A stretch of DNA of 64,000 bases from Octopus sinensis (lineage: Eukaryota). The DNA lies in assembly GCF_006345805.1 (NCBI RefSeq), contig NC_043004.1, positions 49,910,001 to 49,974,000 of the forward strand, read 5' to 3'. The notes beneath the pieces were generated by a model that saw nothing but the letters and a program-made list of their open reading frames with translations, made no database searches and had not been told where the DNA came from. Position 1 is the stretch's first letter. Each line of letters begins with the position of its first letter. Below are positions 7,620 through 46,071 of the stretch, one piece after another. The translations under genes were made by a program, and so were the position numbers.

Positions 7620-8741
7620 ATGCCGGGTAAAAGAAACAAGATAATTGCAAAACTGCTGACAAATCCCAGTGTAGCAACAATGCCAGAAGACGAACCGAGG
7701 AATACATATTTGGAAAACAATCACCTTACCAAGCCTGTCACGTCGAGCACTGTTGTGTCTAACTGCAGGGAGTCTATTGATATGGACCACAGGCAACCAA
7801 TAGAGTTCTCACATGAAGAAATTCTGGTGGACGTTTTAAAACCTCTACTGCATTTCACGGCGCTCTCCGGTCAAGAATTTTATCCACCAGGTTATCTCAC
7901 TAAACGCCAACAATGTTTGTGTAAAGTTTTTAAGTGTATCGTTTTACTATTTTTGGTTGTGAATATATTACGGGTATCTTTCTTATTTGACATACATGCG
8001 ACTCAAGGAAAATTTATACTCATTTTGAACTTTGTGCTGTTTTATTGTATGGAAGTTTTTAAATATATTGTAAAGTTCATCTTTAACATCGTATATGGCA
8101 GAAGATTGTTAGAGAAATTCACGGCATATTTTCCCATGACAGAACAAAAATATTTCAGGAAATTAAAACGGAACGCTAAATTATTCGTGAAGATTTCAGC
8201 TTTCGTAATAATATTGAGCATAACACTAGTAACCTCAGTGTCTGCGACTGTATTCACGGACTCTACCGTGGGATCTTTATTACATATACCAATGTGCGAG
8301 AACAAAGCTATTGAAGTGATAAACACCATATCTTTAAGCTGGTTTGTCGCTTTTGGAATATTAAGCGATACTTTACTACTTAATTTCTTTTCGAAAATAA
8401 TCTGCTGTGAGCTGCATGCCCTCTCACAAAAGCTGAAAGCGCTCGACGAGCAACAACAAACAGTGAGCGACGACCAAGAGCAAACAGTTATCAGTAAGTT
8501 CATTCATCTACAGAAGAAATACGAAGAAATAATGGAGCTACTACAACTAGTCAACGGCTACTTCTCCATTTGTATAGTCGTGACGTTCTTGTTTGCTATT
8601 CTTGTCACTTGTACGCTGATCTACATTTTGTTTCAAGCGGATGTAGTCGCTGATGAAAAACTGGTTGTCTGTTCAATGGTAGTAACGCAGGCCTTCATGG
8701 CAATCTCTATTCTCTACAGCGGTATTTCTATACAAGTTGCT
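7620..8741 (+). CDS. GRL/7TM chemoreceptor variable exon V1 (N-terminus to ~TM6); spliced isoform ~466 aa (412 aa from the ATG at 7782)
   Basis: 374-codon open frame with about six hydrophobic segments and the motifs LKPLLHFTALSGQEFYP, ICCELHALSQKLK, KYEEIMELL and LYSGISIQVA. A phase-0 GTATGT donor is at 8742. It is paralogous to V2-V4. Confidence 0.88.
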
Positions 8742-9714
8742 GTATGTTTATTCCTTTATTTATTTGTTTATTTATTTATTTATTTGTTTGTTTATTTATT
8801 TATTGATTTATTTGTTATTATGTGTGCAGTACTTACATACATACACACACGAACACACATACTTTAGCAGATATGTATAATGCATATATGTGTGTCTGTA
8901 TGTGTGTGTGTGTGTGTGTGTGTGTGTGTGTGTGTGTGTGTGTGTGTGTGTGTGTGTGTGTGTGTTTGGAGGTGCTATACCCCAGTTAAGGGTACACGTG
9001 TCTGTGGAGGGCTCAGCCACTTACATGTAAATTTCACGAGCAGATTATTCCGTTGATCGGTTCAACAGGAATCCTCATCGTCGTAACCGACGTAGTGCCA
9101 CAACACACACACACACACACACACACACATACACACACACACACACACATATATATATATATATATACATACATATATATACATACACACACACACACAT
9201 ATATATATACATATACATACATACATATAATATATATACATACATACACATATATAATATATATACATATATATATATATACATATATATGCATACATAC
9301 ATATAATTACATATATACACACACACACACATATATATATATATATATATATATATACATATGTACATATATATATATATAATATATATATATAATATAT
9401 ATTATATATATATTATATATATATATATATATATACATATACATACATATATATATATATACATACATGTGTGTGTCTGTGTATATGTAGTATGTATTTG
9501 TATGTATGTATATGAATATTAATATTATTCAAGGCAGCGGAATGTTGGTCAACTGTACGTTCTGAGTTCAAATTCCGCCGAGGTTGATTTTATTACTGGC
9601 CTTGTGCCATAATTTGAAACCAGTATTGATAATATTCAAATAATCTATTTAGAATTTGTACACTATATTCATAATAATACGCAATTTATTGCGAATACAA
9701 GTTTTAATTATATT

Positions 9715-10501
9715 GAGTTACTGGATAGATTTAAAAAATAATGTTTTGTAACTAAACACTTTCAAACTTCGGACACTGGTAGAATGTGTCACATAAAACA
9801 TTTTTTACTCTTGGCGTTGTTGAAAAAATTCTGTATTTTGGAAGTTATTTCTTTTTAAAGTTGTATTTCGATAATTTCAACTAATCAATGATGTGTATTC
9901 TGCTGAACAAAATTACTGCCGTTGTTTGTCAACAACTATCGGCGGTGTATATTTCGTTTGTCACTGTTATTTATGACATCGTTCGTGTGTTTGTTCTGGT
10001 TTTAGCTTTAAAGTTTTAGGGTTAGGGTTTTAGAGTTAGTTAGGGATTTAGGGTTAGGGTTTTAGGGTTAGGGTTAGGGTTGGGGCTTTTTAGGATTAGA
10101 GTTACGAAAAAACTGAAAGATGAAGCACGAACACTTATGGTTGTGCCATGAAGTAAACATGCTTCAGATACACTCATTTATTCATACAAACATAACTGAG
10201 ATGAAATATGTCATAAGTAACAGTGACAAACGAAATATACACCACCGATAGTTGTTGTTGACAAGCAACAGCAGTAATTTTATTCAGCTGAATACACCTC
10301 ATTGATTGGTTGAAATTACCGAAATACGTCAACTCTAAAAAGAAATAACTTCCAAAATACAGAATTTTCTCAACAACGCCAAGAGTAAACTATGTTTTAT
10401 GTGACGCATTCTACCAGTATACGAAGTTTGAAAGTGTTTAGTCACAAAAAATTATTTTTAAAATCTGTTGGTCAAAAGGTAAAGAACCGAGTTACTAACT
10501 C
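9715..10501. mobile_element. Fold-back/MITE with ~250-bp inverted arms and internal TTAGGG-like repeats
   Basis: 9725-9978 is the reverse complement of about 10208-10468. A degenerate (TTAGGG)n tract occupies 10013-10100. Confidence 0.75.
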
Positions 10502-10839
10502 TGTAGGAACTTTTACATGGAGACCACTAAATTCAATATCTTTCTTTTGTCGTTCCAACACAACATTCTGGTATATCTCAAGTGAAATCTCAGAAAAAAG
10601 AGCCGAAATACTTTCATTTTTATTATATATCTAGGGCAAGTGAAATACGCCTTATTTTGCTTTTGAAATCAACATGAGAAATGATCCTAGTGTCCTAGTA
10701 CAGTATAGCTGTAGATTCGATTCCATTTCTTCTTCCGGGGAATTTTTCATTCGTGGCCTCCCAGTCGAGGTGCAATATATTGTATAAAGATGAGTTCTTC
10801 TTTGTAGATCAAGCCGTTCAACTCCCGGCTAAAACTGTT

Positions 10840-11115
10840 TAGGGCCCAGTGGTTAGGGCAGCGGACTCGCGGTCGTAGGATCGCGGTTTCGATTCGCAGA
10901 CCGGGAGTTGAGTGAAAACACCTAAAAGCTCCATGAGGCTCCGGCAGGGGGTGGCGATCCCTGTTGTACTCTTTCACCACTCTTTCTCCAACTCTTTCTT
11001 CTGTTGGCCTGCTCGCTTAGCCACCGAGGTGGCGTCATTCGAAGGTTAAAATAATGCGAACGCATTGTGACCAGCGATGTGTAACTACATCTGATGGACT
11101 TGTCGGTCACGTGAT
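10840..11115 (+). mobile_element. tRNA-derived SINE
   Basis: A-box-like CAGTGGTTAGGGC and B-box-like GGTTTCGATTC, then the element body and a (TA)n tail. Confidence 0.75.
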
Positions 11116-44337: not shown

Positions 44338-45226
44338 TATTTCTAGCAAGTAAAGCTTGCCTGATTAATGCCATCTTGGTTGGCGCTTGTCAGATGACGT
44401 CAGAGTCAAGGGGGAGATAAATGTCATTCGCTTCATTAATTTTACGTTGAGATGAGAACTTTAGTACAATTTGGCCAACAGTTGGAAATTAAACAGGGAC
44501 CGGAACCACAGAATGATTGTATTACAGAATTAATTCTCACCTGTCGTTAACTTCTAATCAAACACTGCCGGGGCATATAGTCATAATAGACGTATTATAG
44601 TGATAATAATTAGTTCTCTTCAATTAACCCCCAGCAGGAGCCAGCTTAAATGTCCTCACAGAGTGCGGCTTTTAGGTTAGTTTATATATATAATATATAT
44701 ATATATATATATATATATATTATATATATATACTATATATATATATATATATATATATCATATATATATATATATTATATATATATATATATATATATAT
44801 ATATATATATAATATATATATATATATATACATATATATATAATATATATACATATATATATATACATATATATATTATATACATATATATATATATTTA
44901 TTTACAACTGTTTCAGGCAGGTGCGGGTAAGTGGCACGGACAGAAGTGTTAGTTTTTCAAAATAAACCACCATGTAGACTGCGGTGGTCTATAAAATAGA
45001 AACAAACTATTAAGATATATTCTTTGTGTGCGGCCTGGGTTCAAATTAACCCCGGTGCAATCCTGGTCCGGGTCCGGTAGTTGGGGACCTCTGCTTTAGG
45101 CTATAATATACTATTCGCAAGTGAGAAATCTTAACCATTAATAATGATGATTTTTTTTTCCGTATAAAGTTGTTAGACAAATAAATATTAAGACAATCCG
45201 ATACAGAAGAAATGAGTAGTTTAGAG

Positions 45227-45463
45227 CACGGTTCTCAGCCGTGGGATCCGTAAGGCTCTTAGGGGTCCATATAAGATTTTGAAGTTAAAATGAATGCACA
45301 ATAATTTGGTTATACTTCTACTAAACACAAAATATTTCAACAATTTATTCATACAGGTCCTAACAATATTTAATTATAAAAATATAAAGGGATGTTTTTA
45401 AACATGAGCGGGTCCACCTGAGTAAAATAGAAACCAAAAGCGTTAAATGGTTGAGAAGCTCTG
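45227..45463. mobile_element. hAT-type MITE
   Basis: TIRs CACGGTTCTCAGCC and GGTTGAGAAGCTCTG, with an imperfect 8-bp TSD GTTTAGAG/GTTTAGGC. Confidence 0.65.
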
Positions 45464-45951
45464 GTTTAGGCAATCAATAGTTACAAAGTTCAATAGTTGA
45501 TAAATCAATACTTTAAAAAAATTGGTTAATTTAATTCCTAATAAATAATTGTTTAGAAATTCTATGCGTGTTATTTAATTCCCTGCATGATAATTAATTT
45601 TGATTAATTTTCTCGTATTTCTAATGTCATATACTCTGACTAAATTATTTTGCAAATAATCTAAGCCGACGACCAAATAGTTTGATTTAACCAATTAGTA
45701 CCTAAACTCGCTACTAAATAATCAACACTGACTACCAAATAATCTGTTGATCACCAGTTACTGTACAATGCGAACTCTAATCTAGTGTGACCATCATATC
45801 TACACTGACCTGCACATACTGTAAAATTATCAACAAACACTGTACAATGACCCTAGAATATTTATTTCGCTATTAAATAGAATATGATATGACTTTGGAC
45901 TGTTAATCTGAACTTGTTTTGCCTCTCTTATTTCTTCTCTTTCTTTTCCAG

Positions 45952-46071
45952 ATATCTGGGACTCTCTTGTCCTATGGAGTAATAGTGTTCCAAACTAGTT
46001 CTGTACATCCATGTGATAAAAATATGACGGCGTTCACAGGGAATATGACCGGGAATGCTACATTTGGCTGA
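45952..46071 (+). CDS. GRL shared terminal exon C3: ISGTLLSYGVIVFQTSSVHPCDKNMTAFTGNMTGNATFG*
   Basis: Strong polypyrimidine tract plus CAG acceptor, phase 0. SYGVIVFQ matches the TYhhhhhQF TM7 signature of GR/OR/GRL proteins. TGA is at 46069-46071. Confidence 0.9.
   Translation: MSGTLLSYGVIVFQTSSVHPCDKNMTAFTGNMTGNATFG

Follow-up and report, generated by a model that had tools for sequence, protein, structure and literature searches.

Within a 64,000-nucleotide (nt) stretch of the Octopus sinensis genome (NCBI RefSeq assembly GCF_006345805.1, contig NC_043004.1, positions 49,910,001 to 49,974,000 of the forward strand; hereafter, the window), we found a locus that very probably constitutes one gustatory-receptor-like (GRL) gene of the 7tm_7 (seven-transmembrane ion channel) family, in which alternative long variable (V) exons share a single tail of three short constant exons (C1 to C3). 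The anatomy of a V-exon array followed by one shared tail is real and is conserved across three octopus species, namely, O. sinensis, O. vulgaris, and O. bimaculoides. The RefSeq gene at the locus is LOC118764548, and automated annotation already models it in this way, as one gene with isoforms X1 to X5. The same layout is common among insects.

The V exons are four paralogous segments of ~1 kb on the + strand (Table 1). Each ends in ...LYSGI[SC][IL]Q[VL]A and is followed by a phase-0 donor (GTATGT or GTACGT) at 8741, 17688, 27434, and 33876, within stop-to-stop frames that span 7533-8867, 16522-17700, 26412-27443, and 32962-33885. If left unspliced, V2 runs into a stop after 3 codons, V3 and V4 each do so after 2, and V1 stays open for ~40 codons more. 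A first-pass annotation of this DNA had proposed four such exons with a common ending and donor, and stops within 3 codons of the donor in V2 to V4; all four positions and the stops were as it described. Amino acid identity among the V exons is 50 to 87% (tblastn E-values of 1e-68 to 1e-200), which marks them as true paralogues. V1 and V2 begin with a conserved ATG (MPG[KN]RNK). Homology of V3 reaches upstream to 26352 and is broken by a TAG at 26409-26411, which is also present in every O. vulgaris V3-type copy. V4 shares about 87 to 89% amino acid identity with V3 and is a recent duplicate of it. V1 is intact in the window, as are its orthologues in O. vulgaris and O. bimaculoides. Searches of the whole 2.7-Gb genome with V1 and with an O. 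vulgaris exon described below (V6) returned no V exons outside the four in the window. A V-like match at 62288-62470, in an open frame on the + strand (62233-62577), had 30% identity over 71 residues to the S1-S2 region (E = 0.02 on the window alone) and was judged to be due to chance.

The shared tail occurs once. Using tblastn with a word size of 2, we recovered C1, C2, and C3 as single copies in the window, 7.4 to 32.6 kb downstream of the V donors in the sequence as assembled, which agrees with the single set reported in the first-pass annotation. The C1 acceptor is the only one available to all V donors. C1 to C3 are preceded by AG acceptors, C1 and C2 are followed by GT donors, and the exon lengths (72, 87, and 120 nt) place every intron in phase 0. 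The constant exons are much more conserved than the V exons: between O. sinensis and O. bimaculoides, C2 is identical and only 3 of the 24 residues of C1 are different. The tail encoded by C3 carries three N-x-T sequons, fitting an extracellular C terminus. We found no private C exons between the V exons in any of the three species. Likewise, sensitive tblastn searches with full isoforms against the window, 60 kb of flanking sequence, and the O. bimaculoides and O. vulgaris loci revealed no hidden C exons besides the one described next. Extending the search beyond the window, as the first-pass annotation had advised, yielded no further C1 or C2 when the whole genome was queried with the C1-C3 peptide, and one extra weak match.

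This additional match, C3', is a diverged duplicate of C3 in a copied segment of ~1.2 kb that has 81 to 92% identity to the C3 region. The exon retains an intact acceptor and the TM7 motif. However, 4 of the first 20 residues in its pore-helix segment (ICETLLSYGVTVFQTSAV) are not those of C3, and a 7-nt insertion puts its tail out of frame, with N-x-[ST] sequons still in the old frame. C3' may be used as an alternative last exon in transcripts; four of the five RefSeq isoforms (X1, X2, X4, and X5) end in it. The pore helix may therefore not be identical in all products, given C3', and the identical pore suggested by the first-pass annotation is not assured. Between C3 and C3', on the - strand, there is a TIR-domain exon (Pfam TIR, 45.6 bits; window-equivalent 64701-65048), which therefore belongs to another gene inside the putative 45-kb last intron.

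Table 1. Variable and constant exons of the locus and the assembly gap (window positions; window-equivalent positions beyond the window end)
Feature	Positions	Strand	Description
V1	7620-8741	+	First coding exon, 374 codons; own ATG (MPGKRNK...); N terminus and S0 to most of S6; QVA/GTATGT, phase 0
V2	16612-17688	+	First coding exon, 359 codons; own ATG; QVA/GTACGT
V3	26484-27434	+	First coding exon from conserved second Met (MDHKRS), 317 codons; QLA/GTATGT
V4	32927-33876	+	V3 duplicate with two 1-base insertions; donor QLA/GTATGT
Assembly gap	36608-36707		100 N, within the V4-C1 intron
C1	41324-41395	+	Shared; 24 codons (VEEPIEYLYKLSFNKEHSQDTMTR), 72 nt; ttcag/GTTGAA...AAGG/gtgagt; cytoplasmic end of S6 and start of S7a
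C2	41936-42022	+	Shared; 29 codons (ISLFFARVSNPSYLTAAKMFNIDSSTILM), 87 nt; tctag/ATT...ATG/gtaaga; S7a and linker to S7b
C3	45952-46071	+	Shared last exon; 39 codons and stop (ISGTLLSYGVIVFQTSS...), 120 nt; tccag/ATA...TGA; pore helix S7b
C3'	91007-91168 (contig 50001007-50001168)		Diverged C3 duplicate, 27 kb past the window end, 45 kb downstream of C3

To place the encoded protein, we combined profile searches with structure prediction. The V1 isoform (P0012) matched Pfam 7tm_7 at 50.9 bits (cut-off, 26.6) over model positions 1-367 of 370, and the O. bimaculoides V2 isoform did so at 57.7 bits. The V3 isoform ending in C3' fell slightly below the cut-off (24.6 bits), and V exons alone also score under it. 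An AlphaFold2 model built with 41 aligned relatives (predicted local distance difference test score [pLDDT] of 77.7; predicted TM-score [pTM] of 0.75) had helices S0 to S7b in the expected order. When this model was compared with the PDB using Foldseek, the best 23 matches were all insect odorant receptors (ORs), Orco, or gustatory receptors (GRs), with E-values of 3e-8 to 3e-4 and target-normalized TM-scores of 0.55 to 0.77; the next match had an E-value of 0.3. Sequence and predicted fold thus both assign the protein to this family, in line with the gustatory-receptor-like identity in a cephalopod that the first-pass annotation had put forward. The closest non-octopod relatives are at most 31% identical in a search of 1.8 billion representative proteins. 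A Pfam 7tm_7 scan of the genome gave one short match on an unplaced contig and missed the window's own exons, and it is therefore too insensitive to gauge the size of the GRL repertoire.

Exon boundaries were then located on the AlphaFold2 model. The V-C1 boundary (residues 374/375) falls inside S6 (helix 344-387), the C1-C2 boundary (398/399) inside S7a (helix 393-406), and the C2-C3 boundary (427/428) at the start of S7b (helix 422-443). In the predicted structure, the shared module consists of the end of S6, S7a, and S7b, and the variable part runs from S0 to most of S6. In solved insect relatives, the S0-S6 region forms the ligand pocket. Butterwick et al. reportedly found in 2018 that in Orco the pore is lined by S7b and the anchor domain has S7a at its core, with a further contribution from S4-S6. 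The first-pass annotation had spoken of an identical assembly module. That description is only partly right, because the end of S6, S7a, and S7b are shared but the anchor also draws on S4-S6, a variable part of the protein. The V-C1, C1-C2, and C2-C3 introns are all in phase 0, and 7 codons separate the last of them from the downstream SY of the TM7 motif. Conserved 3' introns and the TM7 motif are hallmarks of the GR family (PMC7746228), and intron phases of 0-0-0 belong to the insect GR plan (PMC6175461).

The O. vulgaris locus indicates what the gap in the O. sinensis assembly might conceal. Since the gap lies in an intron rather than an exon, frame continuity across it is not at issue. Its left flank (35512-36593) matches positions 46616-47682 of the O. 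vulgaris locus (L014) and its right flank (36708-38235) matches positions 59793-61266. The flanks are not contiguous, because these counterparts lie 12.1 kb apart. The O. vulgaris stretch of ~12.1 kb that matches the gap holds one V exon (V6, L014 57430-58458) and no C exon. V6 represents a fourth orthogroup and is the orthologue of the exon called V4 in O. bimaculoides. Whole-genome searches identified no V6 orthologue elsewhere in the O. sinensis assembly, and V6 is most likely unassembled in this species rather than lost. In the gap-free O. vulgaris assembly, six V exons accompany one C set; three of the six are V3-type copies, versus two in the window. O. bimaculoides has four V exons and one C set. 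V exons of all three species end in Q[VLA]A followed by GTA[TC]GT, at the same position and in the same phase. Four V exons are assembled here; counting the content of the gap, the species probably has five or six. The variable/constant layout drawn by the first-pass annotation is borne out by this conservation in O. vulgaris and O. bimaculoides and by the lack of any other C1 or C2 match in the whole-genome search.

Outside the genus, the C exons of Argonauta hians (L015 10001-24548) have the same three-exon structure (starting at 20564, 23517, and 24420), and no V exon was found within 20 kb upstream of them. In the deposited A. hians gene model (492 amino acids), the three C exons are joined to an endonuclease/reverse-transcriptase-like frame from a retroelement. 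Because of the 20 kb that lack a V exon and the retroelement-fused model, A. hians is uninformative about how old the array is.

The V exons are maintained as open frames. In a phylogeny, four V orthogroups (V1, V2, V3, and V6) predate the split between O. bimaculoides and O. vulgaris, and V3 has expanded in the vulgaris/sinensis lineage. All of the orthogroups are open in both lineages (frames of roughly 950 to 1,100 nt) with the donor unchanged, while neutral substitution at the observed divergence leaves the frame open in only 0.2 to 0.5% of trials per exon. We estimated ratios of nonsynonymous to synonymous substitution rates (dN/dS) at between-species dS values of ~0.12 to 0.16. The ratio was 0.41 for V2 (O. 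sinensis versus O. bimaculoides) and 0.59 for V6 (O. vulgaris versus O. bimaculoides); between paralogues, it was 0.4 to 0.55. Together with the ratios for V1 and V3 given below, these values show weak constraint on the V exons, as is usual for chemoreceptors; the frames are open even so.

The window's V1+C1+C2+C3 translation equals RefSeq isoform X3 (XP_036361286.1; V1 with C3) letter for letter. X1 combines V1 with C3', and X2 (XP_036361285.1) is a V1/V2 chimera. X4 (XP_036361287.1) starts at the second Met of V3, and its first 330 residues equal V3+C1 exactly. X5 is truncated and starts at an internal Met of V4 (33145); protein P0009 is 100% identical to window positions 33145-33879. The O. 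sinensis models therefore join V1, V3, and V4 to C1, and none gives V2 as a clean isoform; nor can they include the V exon that the gap has swallowed. A search with V2 retrieved isoforms X1, X2, and X3 of LOC106874590 from O. bimaculoides and isoforms X2, X3, and X5 of LOC118764548 (O. sinensis/O. vulgaris). These RefSeq proteins end in a common tail (VEEP...ISLFF...ISGTLLSYGVIVFQ) and are named "uncharacterized protein." LOC106874590 is modeled alike, with four gene models (three of them RefSeq X1 to X3) that have one V exon each and the same C3 end. Four further V-like open frames from public assemblies cluster with the V exons, two of them inside the V3 and V6 orthogroups. They are uninformative about splicing because they are unspliced read-throughs (ending in ...QVAVC...).

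We account for the locus as follows. The gene follows the ancestral GR plan, in which phase-0 introns divide a long 5' coding exon and three short 3' exons. Tandem duplication has affected the long exon but not its tail, and every copy retains a start codon as well as a GTAYGT donor at the same codon. One V exon would be used per transcript, most likely through a promoter of its own, and the donor of the chosen exon would be spliced to the single C1 acceptor. Any V exons downstream would be skipped because V exons offer no acceptor. The products would be alike in the end of S6, S7a, and the pore helix S7b, and unlike in the N terminus and S0-S6. Such proteins would presumably serve as chemoreceptor channels, and one might speculate that different isoforms co-assemble combinatorially.

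Several observations weigh against this account. The TM7 motif (TY-hhhhh-QF) is kept only in part: C3 reads LLSYGVIVFQT, that is, SY-x5-QT versus TY-x5-QF, with Y and Q retained, a conservative T-to-S change, and F replaced by T (more distant relatives read TY-x5-Q[TV]). Two of the V exons are damaged in this assembly. V2 has a 24-nt in-frame deletion at ~17358, by which helix S4 loses 8 residues (MLLYFFAK); the missing 24 nt are present in both the O. vulgaris and O. bimaculoides orthologues. V4 carries two +1 insertions near 33006 and 33045, 39 nt apart in the DNA alignment to V3 and the O. vulgaris orthologue. Its frame from the ATG at 32927 ends after 53 codons and reopens at ~33046 through the donor, and the O. 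vulgaris orthologue of V4 is intact. The V2 and V4 defects may be genuine, or they may stem from errors in the assembly. With these defects, the "four or more receptors" of the first-pass annotation was too generous for this assembly. Furthermore, dN/dS between O. sinensis and O. bimaculoides is near 1 for V1 (0.79) and V3 (0.83). Within 900 nt upstream, no exact 9-mer was common to the four V types, although this test is crude and uninformative. The RefSeq models are automated predictions whose supporting evidence is not visible. One of them, X2, joins V1 (up to ...LLLNFF) with V2 (from DVIICC...) between window positions 8400-8420 and 17340-17360, where there are no GT or AG sites. X2 is probably a modeling artifact, because this junction lacks splice sites and falls exactly at the 24-nt deletion in V2. 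Finally, no fragments spanning a V-C junction were found among 5.8 billion predicted proteins, including public sequencing-run assemblies, and exact look-ups of the isoform proteins returned genome records only.

These observations could be accommodated if a single V exon, such as V1 or a C1-proximal exon hidden in the gap, were joined to C1, the rest being decaying duplicates that lack a tail and the extra isoforms being artifacts. The V4 frameshifts, the V2 helix deletion, the dN/dS near 0.8 of V1 and V3, the evident artifact in X2, the lack of an independent transcript in the junction query, and the stop codons upstream of the second Met in V3-type and V6-type exons are all compatible with decay. 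Decay is harder to reconcile with four orthogroups that keep long frames and the exact donor in both lineages, against the neutral expectation given above, with the paralogue ratios of 0.4 to 0.55, or with the further V-like frames from public assemblies, which are also open. We regard this explanation as quite improbable. Far more improbable still is that the V exons belong to distinct genes arranged in tandem, whose own diverged C exons were missed or lie in the gap. The gap between V4 and C1 is unread, and exons as short as C1 to C3 could in principle evade detection. Yet C1, C2, and C3 each turned up once per locus in a word-size-2 search, whether of the window, of gap-free O. vulgaris, or of O. 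bimaculoides; the whole-genome search added no C1 or C2; and the O. vulgaris counterpart of the gap is a V exon and no C exon. The first-pass annotation had itself singled out private or gap-hidden C exons as the finding that would overturn a shared tail, and none came to light in these searches.

It is also unlikely, in our view, that the gene is as we describe but that all V exons depend on a single upstream promoter and noncoding 5' exon, with mutually exclusive splicing making the choice among them. No shared promoter-like motif was found upstream of the V exons, and the stop-interrupted upstream homology of V3-type and V6-type exons could be an untranslated exon. On the other hand, every variable exon has its own promoter in Drosophila Gr28b and Gr39a, the clustered protocadherins, and UGT1A. 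V1 and V2 start with the conserved ATG, the gene models begin at the V exons, and no 5' exon is known. A single gene in which alternative V exons share one C1-C3 tail, each V exon probably having its own promoter, thus remains the reading that we favor.

Among known systems, the insect GR/OR loci (Drosophila Gr28b, Gr39a, and Gr23a and cockroach Gr60a-m) are most like the octopus locus. They belong to the same superfamily (7tm_7) and have a long first exon and three short final exons with phase 0-0-0 introns. In both, the first exon alone is duplicated, and the shared tail is the most conserved C-terminal part, including TM7. As in the octopus, some insect isoform exons are pseudogenic (PMC6175461). 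In contrast to the insect loci, the octopus gene belongs to a lophotrochozoan GRL lineage, its introns are far longer (7 to 33 kb or more), it has a duplicated last exon 45 kb downstream (C3'), and its splicing and expression are predicted by gene models. Because the closest non-octopod relatives are so distant, the octopus array is probably an independent expansion of the ancestral exon plan within the octopod lineage.

The clustered protocadherins and UGT1A resemble the octopus locus in logic only, with variable first exons whose donors lead to one constant set. The proteins are unrelated. Each protocadherin or UGT1A variable exon has a characterized promoter, and in protocadherins there is a conserved sequence element, whereas the octopus V types have no common upstream 9-mer. 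GRLs are known from Mollusca and other non-arthropods (Robertson 2015 and Saina et al. 2015, cited in PMC7746228), and the octopus locus shares with them the family, the 3' intron hallmark, and a recognizable TM7 motif. Full-text searches, whose coverage did not extend to Robertson 2015, found no literature on an octopus GRL, on these gene identifiers, or on a molluscan GRL with alternative first exons. The first-pass annotation had not been aware of such an arrangement in molluscs. This stands insofar as we found no paper, but the automated RefSeq annotation already carries the isoforms.

Octopus chemosensation is now explained mainly by nicotinic-like chemotactile receptors. For cephalopods, a 2024 review discusses only these receptors (PMC11526382), and we found no study of GR-like channels in this group. 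The locus is small and open to testing. It has four to six receptor variants built on a common pore module and is conserved across octopus species, with variable exons that evolve fast and constant exons that are highly conserved. It also shows that the exon plan of the family yields the same alternative-exon solution outside arthropods, which bears on whether such arrays are ancestral or convergent. A much bolder scenario, which we consider doubtful, is that the gene is used in the manner of protocadherins. Chemosensory cells would pick one or a few V promoters together with C3 or C3' and would form heterotetramers in which different pockets sit on a common S7 core. Octopus would then have a second combinatorial chemoreceptor system, so far unstudied, beside the nicotinic-like chemotactile receptors, one that grew out of the ancestral exon plan separately from the insect arrays with which it shares that plan. 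For practical purposes, the O. sinensis assembly and its RefSeq annotation misrepresent the locus (one V exon is collapsed, V4 is frameshifted, X2 is chimeric, and X5 is truncated), and the gap-free O. vulgaris assembly (locus at OX597821.1, 24480366-24560493) is the preferable reference for mapping transcripts.

The remaining sequence around the exons contains repeats and fragments of mobile elements. Between V1 and V2, there is a TA-rich microsatellite of ~2 kb (10900-13200; 18% G+C), which accounts for long "YIYIYI" frames on both strands. A G+C-rich block on the - strand between V3 and V4 (29738-31196; 48% versus ~33% around it) has long proline-rich open frames and, by eye, a GIY-YIG-like motif (YVGRTVHRLADRFIEHL). 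It has no Pfam match and looks like a retroelement remnant. In the C2-C3 intron, the - strand carries a mariner-type DNA transposon remnant (43123-44185), with a Pfam Transposase_1 match of 73 bits on 43123-43677 and more frames with stop codons upstream. Downstream of C3, tetranucleotide arrays of (AAAG)n (1.6 kb), (TACA)n (1 kb), and (CATA)n (0.4 kb) at 51532-55766 cause extreme strand skews, and identity to O. vulgaris falls to 85 to 90% across this interval. Past the window end, a 498-codon frame on the - strand (window-equivalent 83180-84673) has cysteine-rich, EGF-like-looking repeats and Asn/Ser-rich runs with no Pfam match, and a similar frame lies on the + strand at window-equivalent 102137-102835.

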